A stretch of 63,409 nucleotides of DNA, counting the filler, from Choristocarpus tenellus KU-1152 (Eukaryota; Protista; Phaeophyceae): NCBI GenBank assembly GCA_964200185.2. It is 10 parts of 10 records of this genome, joined end to end, with 100 filler letters (N's around TTAATTAATTAA, not from the genome) between each part and the next. Parts side by side here need not be neighbours in the genome. Positions count along the whole stretch, not along the records: positions 38,981 to 57,769 come from CAXNAD020000518.1; 9 more parts are not named here. One strand, given 5' to 3'. Position numbers and translations under genes: made by a program. Positions 38,881-57,769 of the stretch are shown one piece after another (the first letter of the stretch is position 1; the number at the start of each line of letters is the position of its first letter). Below the pieces are notes generated by a model that had not been told where the DNA came from, searched no databases, and was given only the letters and a program-made list of their open reading frames with translations.

Positions 38881-39605
38881 NNNNNNNNNNNNNNNNNNNN
38901 NNNNNNNNNNNNNNNNNNNNNNNNTTAATTAATTAANNNNNNNNNNNNNNNNNNNNNNNNNNNNNNNNNNNNNNNNNNNNCCCTCCCCCCTCAGATACTT
39001 CAAGCCATGGTCACACTTCATAAAGCCGAGTTCTGCAGGGGAACCAGGGTCTGGCGCCCTGCAATGATCAATTTCTGGGGGTGGTACAGACACGTCAATT
39101 CCTCACACCCAGCACCAGCATTGATGGTGTTAACACCTCTTCCAGTAGTGCCAGGACTGTCCCCCTCTCTGACCTTCAGAGGGCGGGGGAATGGCCTACT
39201 CTTGCTTGATGACTGTGGGACCTTCACTTTCATGCAAACGACTTGATCTGCAATTCTGTAGAGAAGTTTGTTGATGTGTGATGATGTATCTGCTGATGTT
39301 GTCATGGAGGTATTGTAGCCATCACCAATCAACACACAGGTGCCTTGCGGCCCTGTTGGTCATAATTATGACCCCCCCACACAATGAGATGGAAATCTCT
39401 GTTTAAGTGATTGTCATAAGTAATTGTCATAGTAGTTGTCGAATGCCGCCCACACAAGATACACCAAGATCAAACGCAATTGCTACGTTTCCTTTAAATG
39501 TTTAATATAACGGGTGTTTTTGATGGGGGTGGGCATATATCTGGAAAACTCCCATTTCTCCCCACTAAAAGCTTGTTATTGGGTAAAAGCGGTATGACAT
39601 GACCT

Positions 39606-39703
39606 TTATGGCTAACAGAATAATACTGTGACTCTAGTTTATGGCTAACAGAATAATACTGTGACTCTAGTTTATGGCTAACTAAATAATAATGTGACTC
39701 TAG
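39606..39703. repeat. 33-bp tandem repeat x3
   Basis: TTATGGCTAACAGAATAATACTGTGACTCTAGT repeated, abutting the palindrome. Confidence 0.9.
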
Positions 39704-40620
39704 TTATAGCCTCTCGGTAAGCAAGCGGAACATTTTCTGAATGAGCTAGCTACGCACGGGGTAGGGGAGAGAGGGGCAAGAGGTTACAGCAGAAAATGGG
39801 TTGTCAAATCCTGTCTACGACAGATAGTCTCTGTCACAACACAAGTAGCTCTATCTAGACATGTCGTGCATTTTAAGCTGGAGACACCATGGAGATGGGC
39901 AAGGAGAGGCTTGTTAGATTCTTGGGATGCTTCCCTAGCTCCTCACCCTGGGGTGCAGTACTAAACTAGTTTGGAGACACAGGAGGGCAACGGTGCAGCA
40001 TAGCTGGTAATAATATAGTAAATATAGATTAATGTCTTTCACATACGACAACTGTTACTTTTTTAGGGGTTGTTCTGACATGTGAATAGGTTTCATTGGT
40101 TTTTCCCCTTACACATCTCCAAAATGTCAGAGGGCATAATAATAAAAACACGGTGACTCTTATTCCTGTTTTTTTATTACTATGCCCTTGGACATTTTAC
40201 AGGCGTGTAAGAGAAAAAACCAATGAAAACTATTAATGTGTCAGAAAAATCCCTAAAAAAAGAACAGTTGTTGTTGCAAACGTGAAAGACATTAATCTAT
40301 ATTTACTATATTATTACCAGCTATGCTGCACCATTGCCCTCCTGTGTCTCCAAACTAGCTTAGTACTGCACCCCAGGGTGAGGAGCTAGGGAAGCATCCC
40401 AAGAATCTAACAAGCCTCTCCTTGCCCATCTCCGTGGTGTCTCCAGCTTAAAATGCACGACATGTCTAGATAGAGCTACTTGTGTTGTGACAGAGACTAT
40501 CTGTTGTAGACAGGATTTGATAACCCCTTTTCTACTGTAGCCTCTTGCCCCTCTCCCCCCTACCCCGTGCGTAGCTAGCTCATTCAGAAAATGTTCCGCT
40601 TGCTTACCGAGAGGTTATAA
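39704..40620. repeat. ~917-bp near-perfect palindrome (foldback element or hairpin)
   Basis: 39704-40153 is the reverse complement of 40165-40620 (TTATAGCCTCTCGGTAAGC... / ...GCTTACCGAGAGGTTATAA), with a ~11-nt loop. Confidence 0.95.
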
Positions 40621-42309
40621 AATTTCCACCACGAACGTGTTAAGGTTATTACTATGAGGGTCAAAAGATACTCCTCTTTCTGCAGAGATCATATCGTTGG
40701 CATGCACTAAGTTGTAACCCTATCCTGAACACTGCTATTTCCCATCTTGGTTACCTCATTTAACTGGGCGTGGTCCTCCTAATTGTGAAGGGTTTGATCG
40801 GTTTTTTGAGACCCCCGCCAGCCTTTTAGAGTGTTCAGCAACAACTTGGTCATTAGTGGTTGTAACCACCCATGTTCCGAACACCCTGCAACAAGACCCT
40901 CAACGTGCTTGCTTCCACTGCCTTCCTGATGTTAATTCTTGCGGTCAACAGGCTCGGTGATTGCCCTTGCCTCGGCATCTTCTCCTTCCACTGGTGCCAT
41001 ATGCACAAGTGCGTGCATGACTTCTCATTAGTCATGAAAATAAAGGAATCTTCAATGTGAAATTCACACCGTGCCATAGTTCAACCATTGGTGTTGATTT
41101 TGGCCGTTGGTGCCGACCAGTAGATCCTTCACCACGTTCGCATCTCCCTCACCCATGACACCCTCACTAACTGTGCAACCTGAGTCCATGCTGGTCCTTC
41201 AATCTTGCTATCTTGGCGGTATCCACGATCCAGTTCTAGTGGTTTCCTCACAACCATGTTTGAAAGACACATGAGGTCATTGCCAGCGCTCTGCACTTAA
41301 TCCTGTTTGAAAGTCTCAATACTTCAATTCAAATGAAGAAACTGTTTTACAACCGACCCCTGCAAGGACTCTCCCATTAATGAACTTGGAGCATCTGTTT
41401 GATAGCTATAATAGTTTACTGAGATGACCCTGTGTGGCTTCAAAGATAGGATTGCAAAACAATACCAACGCTGATGAAATATTTACGAAAACCCTGCTCT
41501 GGGTGTACAAGATCTCTCTAAAACGGAGCTCAATGATCCCTGCCAACCAAAGGAGTGTAAGCGGAGCAGTGGTCGGAAAAAATAGGAGTGGAAGAGGGGA
41601 AAAGGCACCTAGGCATGGTGTTGTACAGGAGGGAGCTGGTTGTGTAACTGCTACTCCTGCTTATAGCTATGGCAGCAGGATCTGCTTTGCTTGAGGTTCC
41701 AAGAAGCACCCACAGAGAGTAGAGAAGGTGGTACTCTTCATATTGAAGGACTGGAAGAGGCTTCAACTGCTGTTGCTTTTGCTAGTAGCTTGCGTGGAGA
41801 ATGGGGAAGGCAGCACTGGTCACGGCAGAGAGACTCAAGAGGGAGAGACTGTTGGTATTGCTGATGCTACCACTAACAATACCAAGCACGACAAAGGCTG
41901 CACCAGAACAATTGATGCTGTTGCAGAATACCCTGGTTAACCATTAATTGTCAAATTCGAAGTAGCTGCTAGCTAAACATGTTCTAAAAGACTTAAGAAC
42001 CATTTCAACATACAACGTAGATGTGTGAATTCGTGCCAACACTGTCTTTTTCAAATCAACACATTCACCACCACTAAGAGCTGTTTTCACACCTGGGTAA
42101 GGAGAACATAGAGCAGAAGTATTCACGAAAAAAATGTTGACCCTCGTCCCAAACTCTTAAGGCTAGTATGACAAATCAGAATATCGTGTAAAAATGCGAC
42201 TTCCAAGTGTACATGTGCATTACAAGGACGGTAACATAGTTACCAGCTAAGGAAAGTCGCCTTGAAATGCTCAAACTAAAACATGTATAAAGTAACGAAA
42301 AGGGAATAA

Positions 42310-45300
42310 TCACGACTTGGAAGAGTAGACATGTTCCTTACTCAACTTCTCTTTTGCTGGAACACCTAGAACAACTCTCAAGGTGTCCACATTATGAGTT
42401 AATGCAGCAAGCATAAGGACAGACACACCCTCTCCATTGGTGGCATCCAGTCGAATAGAGGACTGTCATGTGGTGGTGCATGAAGGACAGAAGAGTAAAC
42501 AACAGGGATACTAGTGTACAGGATACATCAGACTGTTACAACTCTTCATGGGGAATAGGAGATTAAACAGGCAACGATATTCATAACCAGGGGGGTGGCC
42601 AACATGTGTTGGGTTGTCCTTGACACTAACAAGTCGCTTACCATCACACAGCATATGTAGGCATTGGCTGCCACACCAGCACACCAGCACAAAGCGTTCT
42701 CAACTCAGGGAAGGGTAACCCAGAACGTCACATATGTAAGAATTAACCCTGCTGCTGCTGGCAGCTTCAAACAGATTACCTCGATGCAAGTGATGAACTG
42801 GTGTGTATTCCAAACAGGGAAAAAAAAATAGCCAAAAAATAAGAAGAGCACGATTTTGTGAACAAACCAGAGACTCTTGCCAATCAGATACTGTAGGAAT
42901 TAGCGGATTAGTATGATACTACGAGGTATACCACCACTGTACACATTATACCGCCATCGGTTCTTTCACAGTAGTTAGTCATACTGTTCCGCTGACTATA
43001 TCACTTACATACATACTTGGTTCCGAACAGCACTGTTGTATGGAGTCTGTGTGGAATTTGACTCCTTGGACAGGATTACTCCTTGAACAGGATTACTCCT
43101 TGAACAGGATTGCCTTCTGGGGTTCGAACTAAAATAAAACAAAGCACAAAAATACCTCATTCCAACACCAAACATCAGATAAGTAGATAAGTCCTGCCTC
43201 CACCTTCTGTTCTCCCAGAGCATCCAGCACAACTCTCAATGTCTCCACATTGCCACTCGACACAGCATGCATAAGGAGAGATCTGCCACACCCATCCTCA
43301 GCTTCAAGCTGAACCAAAGACTGTTTGTTTGGTAGTCCCCAAAGGAGGAAAGAGTGAGCAAGAACATCATCAATACAAACCACACTGCACAAGGTTACAA
43401 CACTCATGTGAAGAAGGGAGATGAGGCAGGGCCGGTTCCACTTCAAACGACATGATACCGATGGTAGTCAACATGCTTTTGAACATCAATATTCTACAAA
43501 AACAATAAAGTACCACAGTTACAACTGTCGGTGCATTGGTTGCCATAACATCACAACCTGTTCCCACCTTCATTAAAGGAAGAACGAACAAGAGTTTTAG
43601 ATCCAAATATTACCCTATGCCTGTAGTTATATATAAAAAAATAGCTACTTCTGAGCTCTGGACTAGTGATTTTCAAAATAGCAATGACTGTTGATGTATG
43701 GAAGGTTTGACTGGTCGGTAGAGGATGATTGCCTTCTCATTTCATTTCCAAACTGAAATGATAGCAAGGGACAAAATACCATCTACCATAAGTCCAAAGA
43801 TGAGACAAGTCCAGTCTCTCTACCTTTGTTTCTCCCAGAGCATCCAGCAAAACTCTCATTGCCTCTGCATTGCCCCTACTAGCAGCATGCATGAGGACAG
43901 ACATCCTGTCCCTATCGGAGGCATCCAGCTGAACAGATGACTAGTGTCAGGTGGTTTACAGGAGGGAAGAGTGAGCAAGAGGATCATTCACATACGCGAC
44001 AGGCACATCAATCAGTTACAATGCCTCGTGGGAAGATTGGAGATGAAAGAGGGCCTCTTCTGGTTGGAACAACATCATGCATAGGCTGGACAACATGTGT
44101 TGGATAGTGTTCGAGGACAGATATAACATGTCACCACTACAGCTTGTTCATGTCCTGCTTGACACACAGCTTGCACCGCCCTTCCAATCCTTTGGGACGG
44201 ACAAACAATATTCTCACATGCAAATTCAACTAGCAACTCAGAAATCTTCAAAATAGTTACCTTTTTTTGAACGCTGTACTACAGCCCTAACCCTAACAGC
44301 AACATATACTCCCGATCAAAAAGGTAGATTTGACTGGCCCCACTGAAGGGGAATCTCTATATGACATCTGAACTAAAAAACAAAAACACCAAAATGCCTA
44401 CTGTTGGAACACTAGAAATCAGGCATATTCACCTGTTCTTTTCCAAGAGCATCCAGCATAACTCTCAAAGTGTCCACATTGCCATTGCAAGCAGCATGCA
44501 TTAGGGCAATCCTGCCAAAACGATCCATGGCATCCAGCTTAACCAAAGATCGTTGCAGGGTGGTGTACAGGGTGGTGTACAGGGTGGTGTACAGGGTGGT
44601 GTACAGGGTGGTGTACAGGGTGGTGTACAGGGGGTGTACAGGGCGAGGGCAAGAGGAGGAAACAATTGCAGGACAAATGAGTCGGGGTTAGGACACTCCA
44701 TGTGGCAACAAGAGATGAAATGGGGTCGGCTCCACTTAACACCATTCTCAGGTTGGTTGGTCAACATGCACGAACTATTCATAACCCACGACTTCAAGTA
44801 CTACCCTTGGAACGACTCATCTGAGCATTACTTCCTACATCAGTAGAACCCCTTCATACCTCCAGGAAGAACGACAAAGAGCTTCAGAACCAACATAGAC
44901 TGTGGAGCTACATATATATATATATTATTCCTACCAAAAGGAAAATAGTCTTCCTGCATTGAAAACTGTATAATGTGAACAAGACACAAACGATCATCGC
45001 CACAAGTCCAGCAATCAGTTATACTCTGTCTTCACCTCATCTTTCACCAGTGCGTCCAGCAAAACTCTCAACATCTCTATATTACCCCTCCGGGCAGCAT
45101 GCATGGGGAGAGACATGCCATCTTCATCTGTGGCATACAGTTGAAAAGACTGCAGCTTGGCGGGGCACACGGGTGGGAAGAGTGGGCGAGAGAGCCGGTT
45201 ACACATAGGACACGCTAATCAGTTGCAACAACATCATATGAAGACCTGAGATGAGATGTGACCTCTTCTGCATCAAACAAAATCACACCCAAGGTGGTGG

Positions 45301-48300
45301 GTGAACATGAGTTGGGGCGTGTGCAAAGTCCATACAAAACATTGCCTCTACAATGCAACTGCCATTGATTGCCACATCAGCACAACCTATATGCAATTCA
45401 CTTTGGGAAGGGATGACAACACTGAGTCAAAGTACCTTAGAGGGTAGAGCCGCGTCCATTTGGGAGTCAAAGTCCAATGTTCCGATTTTGATATTATTTT
45501 GACTATCGTGTTTGTTAGGAAGTGTCAATATTCATGTCCTGGACACCCCTTTTCATAACTTATACATTCTACCTACTTCGAAACATAGAGTAGGAAAATG
45601 TCATAAAACACCTGTGGGAAGCCACGCCCCAAATGGACAAACAGGGCAAAAATCGTACCCTCTAAGATACTTTCACTCACTTCCACATCCAAGAACCGAC
45701 CCTATCACCATGGAAATATATATATGGCCTGTTCTAAACTCTATTGCTATGTGGTAAGTAAGAATGTCAAACTATCTCAGTGTGGAATGGATTGGCGACT
45801 TGGTAATGAACAGCCCTCTTCTTGACATTCAAAACTATTAATAATATGTAAAATAGCCACCAATACCATTCATTGTTACCACAAATGTAAAATAGCTACA
45901 AATACCTAGAAATTTTGTTCTTCCTTCACCTTCTCTTTCCCTAGAGCCTCCAGGAAAATTCTCAACGTCTTCGCACTGCCCCATTTAGCAGCATGCGTAA
46001 TGGCATACCTGCCACAATCATCCATTGCACCTAGCTGAGCAGAAGACTGTTGCAAAGGAGGAGGGAAGAGTGAAAAAGAGGACCATCCACATTGCACAAC
46101 ACATCAGTCAGTCTGATCGCTTCATAGGGAAGTGGGAAATGAAACAGGACCTTTCCACTTCTAAACACAATGATAACTGTCACCCTATCGTGTCAGCCCA
46201 GTGGGCACTTGCGGAACTGTGTTACTATTTTTTTTACGTAACTTTGATCTTCAGAGGCAAGAAGGTGGCAAGTGAGAAGTGTAGTAAAATAATAAATAAA
46301 AAATGCTGCAAAAGGTTAAACATGTGTCCATTGTACTCAGTGAAAACATCCATTGCTCGGGACAATGCCTGTTGGTGTGTAATGCTAAAAACACAAAGTT
46401 GTGTGTCATGCAGGCAACATTGTGTTTTCCCGAGGTGTGATAAATTGATGCCACAGCTGCAGTCATTGGCAAACAAAATATCCAGTTCTATTTACTGTAC
46501 TGGTATGTACTTAAAATGCCTACATGTGCCAGCGCAAAATATTTGACTGTCAATCATTGAAGACTCTATTCCTTACACTGCAAACTAACATGCAAACTAA
46601 CATGCAAATAAGTCAACAACCACAACTCCAGAGACTAGATGTGTTCAATGTTCACCTTGCTTTCTCCCAAAGTGTGCTGTACAATTCTCAAAGTGTCAAC
46701 ATTGCCACTTGAGGCAGCCATCATGAGGACAGTTGTTCCATCTGAGGTAGTAGAATCCATCTGAATAGAGGACCGCCGAGGGATGGCATACAGGAGGGGT
46801 GATATTTCATGAGGCCTCACAAAATAGAAGACGGATCAATTGTATTTTATAGCATCATGGGAAGGGGGTAAACAATAAAAGAGGGTCTCTTCGACTTCAA
46901 AACATCATGACACACTTGATGGTCAATGTGCATTGCATCATCCACAGGATGCCAATCACATACCACACCTTCATCTCCCCTGCACATTTCATTGCTTTGA
47001 CACTCCATTCATCACACACACCATCCGCACTTTGGGGAAGGACGACCAAGCATTAACGCTTAGAATTTGATATCATAACTGCAGTCACCTTCAAACCAGG
47101 TAGGTGCCTTGTTGCTGTACTGGTGAGTGTCCCAAGCACTAGAGGTGTGTGTAGGTACCCCCAATAGAATAATCTGCATGTGAGAACTGAGCTTGGAGGT
47201 GAACACGATATAAAACTGCCAACCACTTCAGCTCACGAGATCAATTGTGTTCTGTCTTCACCTTTTTTCCAAAGGCACCCACCCAGGACAACCTTCAGTA
47301 CATCCACATTGCCCCGAGGAGCAGCATGTAAAAGGGCGCTGTAGCTGTATTGATCAGTGGCATACAGCTGAACCAAAGACTGTTGAAGGGTGGTGATGCA
47401 CACATACAAGGAGGGAAGACGGAGTGAAATGTTCTTTCATCACATAGGGCTGTCTACCTAGTGAGGTATGTCACTTCAGAGGGAGACGGGAGATCAACAG
47501 GCTGATAACGTCACACCCAAGCTGGTCAACATACATTTTTTGCTCTCAACATGAACTCCTATACCACCTCATCTGTGTGTTGCTCACCTCACTCATCACC
47601 AGCATATATCGTATGTGCCTTGTTTGCCACATCAGCACAACCCCTCAAATATCTTCCATGGGAGGGTCAACCGCATTCAAACATCGGCTCTATTTACCAT
47701 AGGTACCTTAAAACTAAATATCATGTATGGATAACTTAGATCTCAGTTGAAGGAAAACAATCCTTCTGATGTAAACACAACTGTGAACTATAAGACACAA
47801 AACATTAACCACATCAACTCTGGAGATCAAACGCGTTCCCTCATCACCTTCTCTTCACCCAGAGCTTCCAGCACGACTCTCAGAGTGTCGACATTGCCAC
47901 TCTTGACAGAATGCACGAGGACAGACCAGCCATGAGACTCAGTGGCATCCAACTGTAATGAGGCCTATTGTGGAGTGGTGCACAAAGGGGAGGAGTAGGG
48001 AACAGCAAGGCTATTCATATGTAGGATAGAACCTCTTTGTGTGAAGAAATGAGATTAAACGGGAACTGTTCCAATTCCAACTATATTTTGATCAGTCAAC
48101 ATATGATGGATATTCCATAGCCTGCAATTCACACATATTGCCAATATATACACTCCATCTGTCTATTGGTCTACATGTCATGAAAATCCTTCCTGCCTTG
48201 GTGTATTATCCAAAATAGTTGTACATCCTCATGTCGGCCCTACCACTGCCATCACCTTCAAACCAAGCAAGCGTCTTCTGCATGTTGCTCTGGTTCAAAA

Positions 48301-51300
48301 TGCGATGCACCTCTGCGTAGAAGGTTTGTCTATCTTACCAGTCGAACGAGAATCGCCTTCCATTTCTTTACAAACACCTGCTACTGAAAATCTAAGCACA
48401 AAAAGAAGAAAAACCCCCGCCAATTACCACATCTCCATATCATGCAATGTCGGCATTTACCCTCTCTTTTCCCAGACGTTCCAGAGCAACTCTCAATATC
48501 TCCACATTTCCGGTTGATGCAGCATGCATAAGGAAACAAGTGCCACTTCCATCCTTAGCATCAAGCTGAACCAAAGACTGCCGTAGGGTTGTGCATTGAC
48601 AGATGGAAGAGTACGCAACACCACATTAGTCGGCAGTTACGCAACAGTACTGGGCACATTAGTTGGCTTCACACCTCCATGGGGAAATAGGAGAGACTCA
48701 AGAAGGCCTATTTCATTCCCAACAACATCACACCCATCATGGTGCTGGTCAGCATGTGTTGGACCGTCCACAAGACAGGAATCACCTTCTACCAGCACAG
48801 TATGAGCATGTTTGGTTGCACCATAATATGCACCGTCCATTCATGCCATATATAGATACATATATATATATATATATAGATATAAAGGCAGACATACAGG
48901 AAGGACAACTTACAGTTTCAACTTACAGTTTCAACTTACAGTTTCAACTTACAGTTTCAACTTACAGTTTCAACTTACAGTTTCAACTTACAGTTTCACA
49001 TCCAAAAATTGCTACCACAACTGCAGTTAAAAAACCCCCTGTAAGTGTACCGGTGTGTATCCAAAATAGTGGTATGAAGGTTAGCACGGAGGATGTGACT
49101 GCCCATTCCTCAGAGTAGATTCTGATGCAGACATCTACATGAACATGTGAACAAGACACTAGGCAGAACCCCCGACAAGTTGAAGGATGAGGCATGTTCC
49201 GTCTTCACCTTCTCTTTTCCCAAGGCGTCAAGGACAGCTCTGAACATGACCACATTTCCACTCAAGGCAGTATACGTAAGGACATGGGTGTCTTCAAAAT
49301 CTAGTGCATCCAGGTGAACAGAAGACTGTCGTGGGGTGGTTGGTGCACATAAAGGTAGGTAAGGTAAGTGGTAAGGTAAGAGTGAGCAAAATGACAATTT
49401 GCTTATTGGACACGTTGGTCAGGAGCATTGTTCGATGGGAGCACAGGGAATAAAATAGGTCCTTTTTCATTTTCAACTCCATCATACCTTCACAAGCCCA
49501 AAAACTATGTATGAGTATGACATAAAAATGCGGCAACTATTTTGGGCACGTAACTAGATACATTCCACATCTACCTTTTCATTTCCCAGAGCACCCAGCA
49601 TGCCCTTGAATGTCTCCACATTGCCACTCAGGGCAGACACCATAAGAACAGAACTGTCCAGTGAATTCTTCGCATCCAGCTGAATGGAAGACTGTATTGC
49701 AATAGTGTGCAGAGGGAGGGAAGAGTGAGCAAGAGCCCCGTTGATATACGGGATGGTTCCAGTTACTTCAATTGCTCGGATGCAGGAGATGAAAGGAGAG
49801 GGCCTGTTCCACTCTCAACAATACCACACGTCGATTGTGCTCAACATGCAATGGTCTAACCCTAACCCTACCAAACAAACGAAATGAAGCCGGTACAATT
49901 TAAGTGCATGGTGGCTACCACATCATCATACACCTTTCACACCCTCAGAATATCCTCACCCTCACAAATTTTTGAATACACTATTGAATACACACTCCAC
50001 ACTTCATTCATGCCTTGAGGGTGTTTAGGACATTATCTGTGGACTCATTTCACTGAAGCAAGTACTGTTCCACTTGTACAGAAGGTTCATACCGGTATTA
50101 AAAAAAAAATGTCTCCATTGCGATCGAGAGTGTTGGAAGCCATTTTTTATTTTTAACACTTTAACACACATGTGAGATCATGCTGAACTATAGAGGAGAT
50201 AAATGTTGGTCCTATTGTAAGTTTATGTATCGTAGGGATTCCAGGGTATGAGTGTAAGTGGAGAGAGCTATTGACAATGAAGACTCAGCCAATGAACGAT
50301 CATTTATGCACTGTTCTTCTTGCAGATACTAGCAGAAAATGGCACACCTTTTCCCTTTCTGCAGACATGCAAAATCATCCATCGTCGTAAAAAAAGAACG
50401 CGTGTAGAGGTAGGTGAGACTCAAATACTCTAACGAGGATCGTCAAAGGGCATGTTCTAAACAAATTTACTCTGTAGGCTCGTTTTGGATTAAAATAAAT
50501 CAATGTGTTTCTCTGTAATAAACATTGATGGTTCATTTATTTAGTATATGGCCTCTCACTATTATTCATGCAAACAACGTAGAAAGTAAGCATGACGTGG
50601 AAAAGATCAAGCACTACAACTTCACATGTGAAATTCTACCTATCTGCATCTTCTTCGGTCCCAGAGCATCTAGCACAGCTCTCAATATTTCCAAGTCGCC
50701 ACTCTCAGCAGCGAACATGAGGACAGAGCAATCGTCATCATCCTTTACATCCAGCTGAACAGAAGCCTTTGGTGGGGTTATGAATGGAGAGAGGAAAGGG
50801 TGAGGAAGGAGCAAGGTATCACAATATATTCCTCAAATACTGACAACAATTCGTGGTTATACTGCAGCTTAGAGGTCATCAACCCTTGTTTTGTCAGTGT
50901 GGGTTGGCCGGTCATGTCCTGTCAGACCAAAAGCATTCTTAAGCATTTTGTCCCTGTCCAAGATCTAAATGAAGACCAAACGGATCCGCAGGCCTTCTCT
51001 CTTTGTGAAAACAATGTGAACGCTAACACTCAAGACACTGTCACCATTGCCACCATAAAGCAGAGGAGCATGTCCTACCACAAAGTTCTATCTTCCAAAG
51101 AATGGAATCTGTCACAAATAGTTGCAGGCATGTTTTTCAGTGCAGGGTGCTCTTACTCTGAATCTCCAGTTGGCAGGGACGTTGTTCTTTAAGCCTGGCA
51201 CACATGGTAACCCTAAACAACAATCTAGATTGGAGTTTGTTCACCTCATCTTTTGGTAGAGCACCCATCAGACTTGTGAATATCTTGGGATTGCCACCCA

Positions 51301-52736
51301 GAGCAGCAAGCATCATTACGGACATGCCTTTCTCTCCTTTGGCATCCAGATGACCTAGTACCTGGATTAGGGTGGACCACTTGGATTAGATTGCAGTCAC
51401 CATCTTGCCAGCTCCATGAGACATCCCACTAACTAGGCAGAAGCTCCCTTCCCCACTGCAAGTGTCAGCGTAGAAGGTGATCTGATGCAAGTGGCAAGAA
51501 TCTCACAATCAATTATCCCTTTCACCAATTAGGTACTTTGTAGACGACATGATCAAATGATCAAATAGGTGATGCTAAAAGTAGTACCCTTGTGAAACAT
51601 GGACTTTTATAGGTCTGAAGATATAATTGAACGATTCGTGCCTATTTCCTAGTTTTGGGGGTAACACAACCATTGGAGCTGGACAGAGGCAGGCAGGCAG
51701 GCAGGCAGGCAAGCATTAAGTAAACCTGGAAATACGACCAAATTCCCTTATGGATGCTCCGAAAGATTTTTTGTCAGGAGACGTCTGCATTATGGAACAC
51801 ACCTGATCTTGGGATAGGGTTCTCTGCAGCCACTGAAGAATTTGAGCAAACACTGACTCATTCCCACCAACTGCGGCAAGCATGAGGGTGGACAAACCCC
51901 TGTACACAGAACCATTCTTCTTGATCTTGTACCTCTTCTCATGCTATTGTCTCACACCCATCTGGTCCATCCCTTCCACCAATAGCCGTACTGAATCTGT
52001 GTCACCAGCGTTAATGGCATTTTCCATGGTCTTCAGTTCTTGCCTCACTTTCCTACGTGAGTTAAATCGGTGGGGTTCGCGCTCCCTGCTATGATCAAAT
52101 GATCAAATAAGGATCGGAGAATAAACTATTCCTTAAACTCAAGATCTCATTCAATAAAGGGACCGCCAATGTACGTTTTTGCTGTGTCGTGATGAAGCCC
52201 TATGAGCTCAGTCGGATACCACAAAAAATAATCGATTCGAACACGGGTGAGTGATTGAATATTATGGTAATCTCATTCTGAGGTAGCGTGATAGCGTGGC
52301 AACAGCCTTCAACAATACGAAGTCTCTCACTAAGATAGGAGAAAACAGCCACGAGGTATCATGGGTAGTCTGCGATACCGGCAATCTGCTGGGGTTGACC
52401 CATACTTTGTTGTTACGGTTGTAACTATCCGATTATCTCGGAGATTTTCTTTGGGGTTAAAGGGGGTTCGGTCTGACACTGCCTCGTGTCCGATCTACGC
52501 TTTCCTCTTTTGCACAAATTGTTCAAACGTGGCAGACGAATGTGCCCCCTCTAAAGGTTCACTGCAGTTGTTAATACAAACCTTTCAGCGCCACTGTCCT
52601 TCGCATGTGGAGTTGGCGTGGAACTCACAGGAGCCTCCAACGGCAATTGTGCCACTGAAACGACATAGGAAACATCGCTCCCACAACCTTCATTGTGAGA
52701 AATAGCGTCTTCTTTGTCAGGTTCCTTGCTCGTCAT
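42310..52736 (-). CDS. Ankyrin-repeat gene built from 14 single-repeat exon cassettes (possibly partly pseudogenised)
   Basis: Exon 1 52736-52582 (phase 2); exon 2 52085-51803 (in-frame TAG at 51946-51944). Cassettes: 51361-51245, 50766-50650, 49691-49575, 49325-49209, 48577-48461, 47964-47848, 47379-47262, 46772-46656, 46046-45930, 45149-45036, 44549-44433, 43940-43824, 43320-43204, 42462-42346 (reads on to TGA 42312-42310). Consensus SxVQLDAxDxxGxSVLMHAAxxGNVETLRVVLDALGKEK is an ankyrin repeat. Confidence 0.85.
44557..44643. repeat. 12-bp tandem repeat (CAGGGTGGTGTA)x7
   Basis: Directly visible, immediately upstream (on the minus strand) of cassette 44549-44433. Confidence 0.95.
45424..45678. 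mobile_element. MITE family B, 3-bp TSD ACT, inserted in an intron of the ankyrin array
   Basis: act-GAGTCAAAGTACCTTAGAGGGTA ... TACCCTCTAAGATACTTTCACTC-act. Confidence 0.85.
48907..48998. repeat. 13-bp tandem repeat (AACTTACAGTTTC)x7
   Basis: Directly visible. Confidence 0.95.
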
Positions 52737-53233
52737 ATCCTTCCTTGAATTTGGGAGTCGCGAAGTTCTATACTTGTACAACTCCAAGCGTCATCTATCT
52801 ACAATGTACTATGAAACTTCGTTGTGGATATCAAATGGACAATGAAAGTTCCTATGGATATCTTTGGAGAAGTACCGTCGTGAACCTTCCACGACCACCG
52901 CCCACCACACAGAAACAAAATTTGAGGTTTGAATCAACATGTTCAAAATGGCGTTAAGGTATACCCTGCACATGTCTTTGCAATCGCGCGTGCTTCTCTC
53001 TTTCTCAACGCGCGCGTGGTCCTCAGCAACAACCCAACCTTGCACTTGTTACGCGTGGAGCATTGATTAGGACCTATCTCGACGGTACTTCCCTTCCTAG
53101 CGACTGCATCATATACATCTGCTAATCGAGTAGGGCTGATCCTGAACTTAGCAGCGTTTTTTAGCTGACCCTGATAGTGCATACTAAGGGAGTTTTTTGA
53201 TCTGCTTGAAGGCTGTATTGAAGCCTGACCTCA

Positions 53234-56200
53234 ATGGCCCTTACGGGGACCAAGCCGGGGAGCAAGTCAGCAAGATGTGATGCAGCATGGATGGGGTGGG
53301 GAAGGGTGGCGGTCTCCGTGCTGACGTTTTCTATCCGAGGAACGGCAACCGGGGCAGCGGTCAGCGATGAGACCCTCGTTGCTGAGGCAGGATCAATTGC
53401 TTCAGATGGACGAGATCTCCCTCCATTCTTTATCCAAGACCCGATTGACGGTCTTTGTCTGAGTGGGGGAATATTTAGACGTTGCGCGATAGACACCCTT
53501 TGGCAAGCATATGGTGAGCCAGGGGACTTTGCGGTGCGACAAATGGCACTGGAAGAAGGTGAGTAGTGCTTTCATTTTCTGTTGCAATCACCACACAGCT
53601 TTGTTGTGATATGCGGGCACGGTGAATCTCACAGAGTAGGCAAAGCAAAACACAGTTAAAATATCTTCGCTTTCGTCTTCATTACCTCTGTCTTTAGGTG
53701 AACCTCTTGGTAGATACATGATACGTAACATGTAAGCCTTTAATGGCATTCGTACACCCAAGTAAGGAATGTCCTTTAGTTGTACCGTGTTGTGAGAAGA
53801 GATACTTTGCAATAAATCTACCAGAAAACCATTGTATGGGTTCAATGCAACCTTTGTTGTTCGGGAGATTCAAAGGACATTCGTTTATCGGCTCCAATAT
53901 CTGTGGCATGTTTCTAGAAGTAGGTGCTGATGATGTTATCGTATCCTCTCTCGCTCAAGCAAACATCATTTCATATTTTTTCCTTTTATATTAGTATACC
54001 ATAGGAACAATAAGCCTAGGAACTATCAGCAGACTTCTCCCAGGATGCTTGTTATCCCTTGAACTGAGCCATACAGGGTTGCGCCTAAAACACACGTATG
54101 CCAGACTGCAGTGTGCGAGGCTGTCTTTGACAATGATATGGTGCGGCATGTATGCCATGCACTAGACTTGTGCTCAGAGAATATGATATGCTTCAATGGT
54201 CCTGCTGTGATTGTGTGCTATATTTCCAACACTGCTACCTTCCATAAACTCAAACGTGAAAGAGTTCTGTTGACATGTAGGAATGCATGACCCAGACCTG
54301 CTAATTGGATGAGACTTCAGCTTCGTACTCTTGAAAAACCAGTGTGCTGGACCTAGGACATGGGTGCCTCTAATTTCCATTCCAAAGTTTCTTGGTTGAC
54401 TGGCTTGTCCTGGCTTCTGGTCTGTGCATCCACAGTGACATCATAGAAACTGTTGCCTCACACACGTTGTTTATGTTATCCACAAGTCTACTCAAACGTA
54501 CCTAATTAAAACAGTCCGCTGGTGCAAGTGTGTTAATCAAGTTGTAGTCCCTTCCCCTCTCTGTTATGATATCCGACTGTAGTTGGTGCTATGTCCTCTC
54601 CTCGCTTGTTTTCTCAATACTGCAGCTGTTCTTCTCGTGGTGACTGACTGTGTGCTTTGGATTGATGTTGTGTACAATCCTGTTCCTCTTGTTGCAATAT
54701 GTACGAGTTCAGGGAAGGACACAGACAGCAAGGTTTGCCTAGACAGAAAGAGCTGTGATTCCACTAACTCGGCTATTCGAGCTGGGAGCTGTGATCACTG
54801 TGGGGCAAAGGGCTGGAGCATTACAAGGTAAGGTGTAGGATAGAAACCTTGTTTAACTTTGGTTGTCTTGCCCCATTTTGTGACCGGTTTAGGCTTAGGG
54901 TTACAAGGGGTGACAGGAAACAATTTTTATAGCATCCTTGGGAGCTTGTAACTGATGTGGGAGAGTGTGGACCTGATTACCGAATGGTTCTTGTTGTTTT
55001 GTTGGATTGTGCTGGCGGAAGATGTTCCGAAGTGAAGGGGATGATATAAACAATTCATATTCCAGTGTTGCAAGTATGCTGGTTGTGTGACTGTGATGAT
55101 TTTGTGGTTAGACTGTTTTTGCACATTGTTGGAACAACTGTAGTACTTGTAGTTCTGCAATTGTGTTGTTGAAGTGTCTGTGTTTTTCAAAACTTCAGAG
55201 CTCTTCCGAGGGCCAGTTTATAGAGTATGCAGAAGTCATTGTGAGAACGCCTGTATCCTTCCCCTTTACCTCGACTTTCCTATTCCCCTCCCCCCCCCCC
55301 CAATTCAGATCACCATCTTCCCATTGTTGTCTTTATGCATGCTTCTTTGTTGACCATGTGTTGAATAGTATGCGGGGGAGGCTTTAATTGTGTAGGATGG
55401 TATCCAATCTACATTATTGTCTTTTGGAGGCCTTGCAAATACCCACTATGATGTTACCCTACAATATCAACATAGGGGTGCATCTATTCTATGCCTCCCA
55501 CTGAGAAACTGCAAGAACGCCTTCCTGATGTGATATATTTCCTTTGTCCGCACAACCTGTTTGAAGTGATGCTGAACAGAAGAAGTAGATGTATACTTCA
55601 TCACAGCTATCTTTTGTGATGATTAATCAATCAATTGTCTCTTAGTCACCATGTTCACAGAACCTGTTTTGTGGCTGTTCATGATCTCATTCCTGACTTG
55701 TAGTGAGGGTTAAGGTTGAGGGGTGGGGCAAAACAGGAGGCCTGCTTTTGCTTGTGGTTTGGTGCTATGCTATTGGATTAACTCATCCTTTTTCAAATAT
55801 GCCTGCTTCTTGGCATGTATCTTGTTGATGCACATGTCCAGGTTGCCTTTTTGGTCTCCCAAAGTAGTGTGTGATGCCAAAAGACAGCTAAGCTGTTGTG
55901 ATTGATATGTGTCTGGGTGGAATAAAAAAGATGGGTAAAAATTATGTCTAGTTTTTGTCTTTCTTCATCATGAACATAACTTCTCATCCTATATTGGCAT
56001 CATATATCACCTACTATGAATGAGTTGATGTTACGTACAGTACTTGTCCACCGGAGGCACAAAGCAACAGCGAAATGCAATGTGCTGGCCCTAATCCTAA
56101 GTCCACCCCTAACCCTAATTCTAACCCTGATCTTTCCTTGTGGCCTTTCATATGTTTCAGGTACCCTGATGATGACCTTGGATATGCGCTATCGGCTGGG

Positions 56201-57402
56201 ATTCCGCCCTCAGGATTAGATCTAGCTGTCTCCAGTGGGATAATGCTGCCTCAGCTATCAAGTGGCTGCTGTGTTGTGAGGGACGGGGATATTGCTCGCA
56301 TGGGTTTGTGTGGTGATAAAACACGCCTCCATGTACAGGTAAGGGAGTTAGGGTTAGGGATGAACTTGTTTCGAGATACTGTAGTACCAACAATTGGACT
56401 CTCTGTGGTGATGGTCTTTTTTGTGCTTGAAGTTAGGTTTCTTCGGATTAAGTAGCCTGTATCTTGAGGGGATCTCTTGGGGAGAGGGGGCTTGGGGTGG
56501 TGGGGGTTGAGCGGCAGCGAAGGAAAGTAATCACTGTGATCTTGTATGTATGGTGCATGCAGCTAAAGTCTCTTGTATGTATGGTGTATGCAGCTAAAGT
56601 CTCTCTTCAAGGGTGAAGATTCCCTCTCAAGGGGCACTTGAAGATTTGCACAAGTGTATGGTGTTTGCTTTTGCTGTACTGAATGAAGTTGAAATACTAA
56701 GTTGAACTCTAAGTTGAACTACAAACTTGATCTATGAAGATGGAGGTGCCATGGTATTCATTCAATCAACCATCTTTGCTGAACTGGATTTATATGCATC
56801 CCATACAACAGTGCCTTAACCCTAATCTGTATATATGTTAGACACTGTCCCTAACCCTAAGTTTGTGTCCTAGCCCTACCATGTACACTGTTTTTAAAAA
56901 TGGTGGATACCACTATTAGAGGATAGTAATGTTATAATTCCTTTATCTCAGTGCACAAACATATACATATATACTGCAGTCATCACTACAGTGAGGCTGA
57001 CTAACGTATTTTTTTCTTTAACACCCCCCCCCCCCCCCCCCCCCTCCCCCGCCCCCCACAACCCCACATCAACAAAAAACNNNNNNNNNNTTTTTCTCAG
57101 TAAAAAAAAAATTACATATATACTGCACTAACCACCACAGGGGGGCCTACTAACTTTTTTTTTTTTTTCCCCCCCCCCCCCCCCCCCCACTCCCAATCAA
57201 CAACAATATATACATTACGAGAAAGTTTGCAAGTGTGGAGGACATTGCTGCAATGAGCGCTCCAGGGGTACGACTCATCACAGCTGCCAGTGATGGAGAC
57301 AAGAAGTCAGTTAAGAGGTGGCTAGAGCAGCAGGTGCCAGTAGATTCCCGGGATTGGGATAACTTGACACCCATCATCGCTGCCGCCAGTCAAGGTCACC
57401 TG
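53234..57402 (+). CDS. Probably secreted protein with a Cys-rich (ricin-B/beta-trefoil-like) N-terminal domain followed by ankyrin repeats (5' part)
   Basis: Phase-consistent exons 53234-53558, 54713-54827, 56161-56338, 57226-57402. Translation includes PFFIQDPIDGLCLSGGIFRRCAIDTLW...CLDRKSC...CDHCGAKGW...RLITAASDGDKKSVKRWL...DSRDWDNLTPIIAAASQGHL (ankyrin), with a hydrophobic N-terminal segment. Confidence 0.85.
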
Positions 57403-57629
57403 GTGAGTTGAGATTGGGAATAGATTGTGAGTTGAGGGTTATGGTTCATGGAGTAGGGTGTGTTATTTTCGACTTTTTGAAGATTATTGACCAGGGATGG
57501 TGAAATAAATCAGTCGTATTCTGTTTTACTAGTAATTTGTGTTTTTTAGTAGCAATTTGTGTATCTTTGGTAGTAATTTGTGTATTGTGATGTCCAGTTG
57601 TGTGTTGTAGTTAGTGTGGTCTCTTGTTA

Positions 57630-57769
57630 GTATTGTTCGTAAGTTAGTATTGTTAGTATTGTTAGTAAGTTAGTATTGTTAGTATTGTTAGTAAGTTAGT
57701 ATTGTTAGTAAGTTAGTATTGTTAGTATTGTTGGTATTGTTATTAAGTTAGTATTGTTGGTAAGTTGGT
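57630..57769. repeat. (TTAGTATTG/TTAGTAAG)n tandem repeat
   Basis: Directly visible. Confidence 0.9.

Follow-up and report, generated by a model that had tools for sequence, protein, structure and literature searches.

Does a series of ankyrin exons in a brown alga represent a set of freely combinable binding modules, or what remains of a gene with a different past? This question is raised by a locus of Choristocarpus tenellus KU-1152 (assembly GCA_964200185.2) in a window of 63,409 nucleotides, which is the whole stretch of DNA that was analysed and consists of ten parts of the genome joined end to end with filler. An earlier note on this DNA had described a gene of two leader exons and 14 interchangeable cassettes, a natural library that might encode a stand-alone binder. 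We put the chance at about one half that the locus is the expanded and diversified ankyrin domain of a brown-algal ankyrin-TRP channel (ANK-TRP) gene, which is now truncated or decaying.

The array is located in the part derived from CAXNAD020000518.1 (positions 38981-57769, GC content 38-53%). Profile searches identified 14 homologous ankyrin cassettes, all co-directional on the minus strand from 51361 down to 42346 (Table 1), and the array is far above chance expectation. Twelve cassettes have a length of 117 nt, C10 has 114 nt and C07 has 118 nt, all in phase 0, where 117 nt denotes the homology register of the cassettes and not a set of functional splice sites. The number, lengths, and phase given in the earlier note were all recovered, and its spacing of about 0.4-1.1 kb corresponds to measured start-to-start distances of 366-1075 bp. 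Each cassette encodes a 39-residue ankyrin-like repeat. The claim of one ankyrin repeat per cassette is backed by Pfam, in which nine of the 14 cassettes match Ank_4 at E<=0.1 and the top single match is to Ank_5 (E=6e-6); the cassettes are thus members of the Pfam ankyrin repeats, with most single repeats scoring below the gathering scores. Additional, inverted, or intronic cassettes were not found in profile searches of both strands across the CAXNAD020000518.1 part.

Table 1. Positions of the array, its cassettes, and the flanking gene parts in the window.
Feature	Position	Strand	Description
Probable exon 1	52582..52736	-	starts with ATG at 52736; N-terminus of low complexity; donor in phase 2
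Leader exon 2	51803..52052	-	capping ankyrin helices and first repeat; phase-2 acceptor, phase-0 donor
In-frame TAG	51944..51946	-	within leader exon 2
Whole array	42200..51775	-	intron-plus-exon duplication units, ~600-620 bp where intact; introns mutually homologous
C01	51245..51361	-	117 nt, both splice sites (AG/GT) intact; diverges most of all cassettes
C02	50650..50766	-	117 nt, donor lost (AT); following GT out of frame
C03	49575..49691	-	117 nt, intact
C04	49209..49325	-	117 nt, intact; upstream intron reduced to 249 nt
C05	48461..48577	-	117 nt, intact
C06	47848..47964	-	117 nt, intact
C07	47262..47379	-	118 nt, net +1 frameshift close to 3' end
C08	46656..46772	-	117 nt, acceptor lost (GG); backup AG in frame, 12 nt into the exon
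C09	45930..46046	-	117 nt, intact
C10	45036..45149	-	114 nt, intact, one codon short
C11	44433..44549	-	117 nt, acceptor lost (GA); backup AG in frame, 12 nt into the exon
C12	43824..43940	-	117 nt, intact
C13	43204..43320	-	117 nt, intact; commonest best partner of other units
C14	42346..42462	-	117 nt, acceptor retained, donor lost (TT)
Putative tail	42310..42345	-	11 codons and TGA read through lost C14 donor; like intron 5' ends

Several other elements are present in the same part. A multi-exon gene on the plus strand (53234-56340) is divergent and oriented head to head with the ankyrin gene, starting about 500 bp from its ATG; its first exon comprises 110 codons and it has no match in Pfam or the Atlas. 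A second ankyrin gene, of conventional type, begins with an exon at 57253-57402 (plus strand, Ank_4 E=8e-6) whose boundary differs from that of the array exons; it is truncated by the edge of the part. Between these two genes, a 103-nt repeat (78%) surrounds a 10-N gap at 56942-57193, includes poly-C runs, and is probably an assembly overlap artefact. On the other side of the array there is a MITE-like fold-back element (39704-40620) with 339-nt arms of 97% and inner 107-nt arms of 82% complementarity; its left edge carries a 33-bp tandem repeat. The stretches 38981-39450 and 40650-41950 are degenerate, coding-like, and without Pfam match, and by eye are possibly retrotransposon relics.

The two leader exons of the earlier note could both be modelled, the first as an inferred exon that has no family match in a Pfam search, but the in-frame TAG in the second had been overlooked. 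This stop can be bypassed solely via weak sites, for example a phase-2 acceptor at 51899, whose pyrimidine tract scores 7/20 compared to 13/20 for the main acceptor and whose use would drop the capping helices. A small intron excising the stop was also considered and rejected, no candidate being convincing. Fully canonical with respect to acceptor, donor, and frame are nine of the 14 cassettes (C01, C03-C06, C09, C10, C12, and C13). The cassettes can therefore not be regarded as interchangeable in the way that had been proposed: C02, C08, C11, and C14 have lost splice sites, and C07 has a frameshift. The backup AGs in C08 and C11 would result in 105-nt exons. The pyrimidine tract of C11 contains a 12-bp tandem repeat. 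Any single lesion, read here from the assembly sequence, may be an assembly error. The 11-codon tail with its stop at 42310-42312 looks like a read-through of the mutated C14 donor into intron-like sequence, given a weak profile match of the tail to the 5' ends of the array introns (E=0.024). This resemblance suggests that the gene formerly continued downstream, and the apparent C-terminus would just stem from the loss of the C14 donor; the idea of a stand-alone binder is not supported. Together, the leader stop and the lost C14 donor argue against a working product.

The repeated unit consists of an intron and an exon, together about 600 bp, and most of the C03-C14 introns can be aligned with one another. 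Their mean identity is 0.66, which is calibrated to about 0.25-0.3 substitutions per site per lineage. The cassette exons are 45-80% identical, with nearly star-like trees, and how similar two units are does not depend on where they lie in the array (Mantel r=0.04). No exact match between units exceeds 21 nt, the most similar pair of exons is 80% identical, and recent exchange tracts were not seen in the unit-to-unit comparison. From these comparisons the array is seen as the product of an old burst, after which the units show no trace of recent exchange.

The copies have not drifted freely since. The 14 cassette exons contain not a single stop codon compared to about ten expected under neutral drift at intron-level divergence, and only two small indels compared to about seven gap openings per 100 aligned intron bases. 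Codon models, which we implemented ourselves and which had to rely on 39 codons and an uncertain tree, gave an overall omega of about 0.5 and a framework omega of 0.40-0.53. The framework of the cassettes was under purifying selection (omega 0.4-0.5). Codons 8, 10, 11, 13, and 21, in contrast, change at a much higher rate than either framework or introns and are the sites flagged in the comparison of M8 with M8a (p=5e-6 on the exon tree), so that the diversification supposed in the earlier note is found at five binding-face codons. A fixed test on six binding-face positions, which were picked after the per-column variation had been viewed, resulted in an omega of 2.07 (p=0.001), and the observed test value was reached in one of 183 neutral-surface simulations. 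The identity at surface codon positions is 0.32-0.43 compared to 0.56 at framework four-fold sites, and the surface codons evolve 2.4-3.7 times faster than the neutral rate. This faster-rate model beats the high-omega model because all three codon positions are scrambled. Classical positive selection is therefore not cleanly demonstrated. A mutational hotspot is unlikely, as it would have to spare the conserved codons 9 and 12 between the fast sites. Constraint on synonymous sites was rejected as a source of the signal, the tip dS of 0.41 not being below the intron divergence. We read the fast binding-face codons as diversifying selection, with the reservation that 39 codons and an uncertain tree form a narrow basis.

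The five fast sites 8, 10, 11, 13, and 21 correspond to what we take to be positions 33, 2, 3, 5, and 13 of the ankyrin module. Designed ankyrin libraries randomise positions of the concave face, of which six were chosen in PMC4308713, and with this numbering the fast sites coincide with five of these six. The array shares this choice of variable positions with DARPins and other designed libraries (PMC4308713, PMC8229355) but has natural 39-residue repeats without TPLH motif and no sign of combinatorial assembly.

A probable origin of the exon design emerges from the closest relatives found. The top eukaryotic matches in a profile search are Ectocarpus genes, in agreement with the brown-algal context claimed before, with weak similarity (E about 1e-5). 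This search, which like all others was run exon by exon, retrieved the Ectocarpus fasciculatus protein P0152 and short-read relatives; the longer P0162 belongs to the same cluster. A homologue search with a single exon had no matches, and neither had a search with P0162, for which its low-complexity N-terminus is probably the cause. At the Ectocarpus loci (CAM9528067.1 / CAM9272457.1; L004, L007) three phase-0 exons with lengths of 129, 129, and 135 nt, one repeat each, come after a leader ankyrin exon. The intron is at the same repeat codon in Ectocarpus and in the array, with a mean ungapped BLOSUM62 score of +25.6 at offset 0 and scores of -20 to -45 at all other offsets. The leaders are also similar: in a pairwise alignment of 79 columns, leader exon 2 and the Ectocarpus gene's first ankyrin exon are 28% identical (E=0.002). 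Thus, the array has the N-terminal ankyrin exons of brown-algal ANK-TRP genes in the phase and register of the family. The Ectocarpus homologue is predicted to fold as an ankyrin stack, and its ankyrin exons are followed downstream by hydrophobic exons and the motif LPPPFN, known as TRP box 2 (PMC8539334). Its single membrane exons have no match in Pfam or the PDB. Based on motifs and hydropathy, it is most likely an ankyrin-TRP channel. At NCBI the gene (L007:10001-22650 and L004) is split into two unnamed partial models; the donor of its leader ankyrin exon is a conserved GC.

The Ectocarpus gene has three repeat exons of 43-45 residues with unrelated introns, whereas in the array there are 14 exons of 39 residues, the introns are homologous, the surface is hypervariable, and channel exons are missing from the sequenced part. 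The Ectocarpus ankyrin exons are static, with a fixed order and 82-100% conservation among orthologues. Because the register is shared, the arrangement of one repeat per phase-0 exon would be inherited and is not in itself evidence of shuffling. A library of freely combinable cassettes, as suggested earlier, is hard to reconcile with a register taken over from a gene with static exons and with lesions in five cassettes and the leader. New relative to the Ectocarpus gene is the amplification together with the surface diversification. Neither channel exons nor a TRP box were found in the 3.4 kb downstream (38981-42345), where the CAXNAD020000518.1 part ends, and the downstream reading frames have no Pfam family match. 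As no TRP exon was found in the part, the assignment to the channel genes is based on the register, the likeness of the leader, and one weakly similar homologue.

Two other types of brown-algal genes have a comparable design. The NB-ARC-TPR genes of Ectocarpus also consist of equal-length one-repeat exons, have exons inactivated on the coding strand, show a selection signal at repeat sites, and are frequently pseudogenes (PMC3341825). They are defined by an NB-ARC domain and TPR exons of 126 nt (42 residues), whereas the array has ankyrin exons of 117 nt and no NB-ARC domain. The brown-algal ROCO-LRR genes have one repeat per exon and diversified residues on the concave face (PMC3341825, PMC11378527) like the array. 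However, their exons are in phase 2 and not in phase 0, and of the Roc-COR domain and the 72-nt LRR exons that characterise them the array has neither, its repeats being ankyrins of 117 nt. Active shuffling of ROCO genes is recognised by inverted intronic exons and traceable recent recombination tracts (PMC3341825), and both are absent from the array. Other ROCO-type characteristics are present, namely equal-length exons of the same phase, exons inactivated on the coding strand, and diversification of the ligand-facing residues, although here the faster-rate model fits better than the high-omega model. Of the supposed ROCO/NB-ARC-TPR-like architecture the one-repeat-per-exon design holds, but not the traces of shuffling. 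By this comparison the array appears to work like the ROCO-LRR and NB-ARC-TPR arrays in design and selection and is a member of neither.

Further arrays of this type were also sought. Among representative proteins, generic 33-residue ankyrins were found and a single match with a 39-residue period, P0110, encoded on a JGI metagenome contig (L001). It resembles the array in its period and a similar motif but is intronless, is encoded on a virus-like, gene-dense contig, and reaches only about 24 bits per repeat; the resemblance is probably convergent or distant. The contig, which resembles those of giant viruses, contains three tandem intronless ankyrin genes (L001:4131-9012), one with the 39-residue period, adjoining TBP and cyclin genes. 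Scanning metagenomes yielded two ankyrin genes of a generic, bacterial-looking kind, and a scan of viral sequences had no match. Paralogous arrays were thus not found in representative proteins, the homologue profile search, metagenomes, or viral sequences. A description of brown-algal ankyrin exon arrays was not found in the literature search, which had most subscription papers outside its scope.

A history that would accommodate these observations starts from an ancestral ANK-TRP gene with each ankyrin repeat on its own phase-0 exon, as is seen in the Ectocarpus homologue. One intron-plus-exon unit would have been amplified in tandem to 14 copies in an old burst, as suggested by the homology of the units, probably by unequal crossing-over. 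The copies would have been translated for a long time, during which the framework was kept and the codons of the concave binding face diversified faster than neutral. Such rapid change might reflect selection for varied ligand recognition, possibly with an immune role. Because the cassettes are in phase 0, single ones could have been switched off by splice-site loss with the frame unbroken. In the past, the array would have been linked to a TRP pore. The last donor would then have been lost and a stop gained in leader exon 2, which most likely leaves a truncated or recently dying member.

The best-surviving alternative, rather unlikely in our view, is that the gene is a live full-length ankyrin-TRP channel, whose channel exons lie past the edge of the part behind a transposon-filled intron. 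The damaged cassettes would be skipped, the leader stop would be bypassed or be an assembly error or allele-specific change, and the variable ankyrin array would gate a calcium channel. That the cassettes are free of stops and the lesions are concentrated at splice sites fits decay poorly, since uniform neutral decay would produce zero cassette stops but four broken splice sites with a joint probability of about 0.035 at best, and the gene may therefore still work. Also, C08 and C11 retain in-frame backup acceptors, the acceptor at 51899 skips the leader stop in frame, and the downstream 3.4 kb, at the end of the part, are repeat-like. However, the pyrimidine tract of this acceptor is poor and its use would cost the protein the capping helices, every other intron at the locus is shorter than 1 kb, and the downstream 3.4 kb are devoid of channel exons.

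Two further readings are improbable to a similar degree. A working gene for a stand-alone ankyrin binder that truly ends at the C14 read-through and whose cassettes are actively shuffled or alternatively spliced would agree with equal-length phase-0 exons, a hypervariable binding face, the missing relation between similarity and array position, and cassettes inactivated on the coding strand as in the NB-ARC-TPR genes (PMC3341825). Against it stand a stop in leader exon 2, an intron-derived tail, the failure to find inverted relics or a paralogous array, and exact matches and exon identities too low for recent exchange. The array could also come from a different family of brown-algal ankyrin genes, one with the ANK-TRP exon register that never had a channel domain. 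The repeat length of 39 residues compared to 43-45 in the Ectocarpus gene, the weak similarity, and the sampling of a single orthologue group would allow for this, but TRP-like features are seen in the one spliced homologue found, and the gene must once have extended downstream of C14, as its donor shows. An ordinary decaying tandem duplication with surface variability by relaxed constraint alone, to which the six lesions, the small number of analysed codons, and the tolerance of surface positions in any ankyrin repeat might point, is very improbable, because relaxed constraint is capped at the neutral rate that the surface codons clearly exceed, simulations with a neutral surface hardly ever reach the test value, and the exons have so few indels compared to the introns.

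If the expanded and diversified ANK-TRP domain turned out to be a lone pseudogene, it would be a neat but minor example of the birth and death of an exon array. In the published view, only LRR and TPR loci of Ectocarpus diversify their repeat exons (PMC3341825). TRP genes are strongly expanded in some brown algae, with 20-51 genes and the maximum of 51 in Sargassum fusiforme, and this expansion has been interpreted as environmental sensing (bioRxiv 10.1101/2024.02.19.579948). It is a tentative and on balance doubtful possibility that some brown algae have an expanded TRP class whose ankyrin domain is a modular array of exons shaped by diversifying selection. Such genes would form a third algal variable-receptor system, where calcium entry would be gated directly by the binding of a ligand, and this locus would be a live or recently dead member. 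A TRP-derived ankyrin array with fast binding-face codons would add a third scaffold for repeat-exon diversification and, if true, would tie the unexplained TRP expansions to the recognition of variable ligands.
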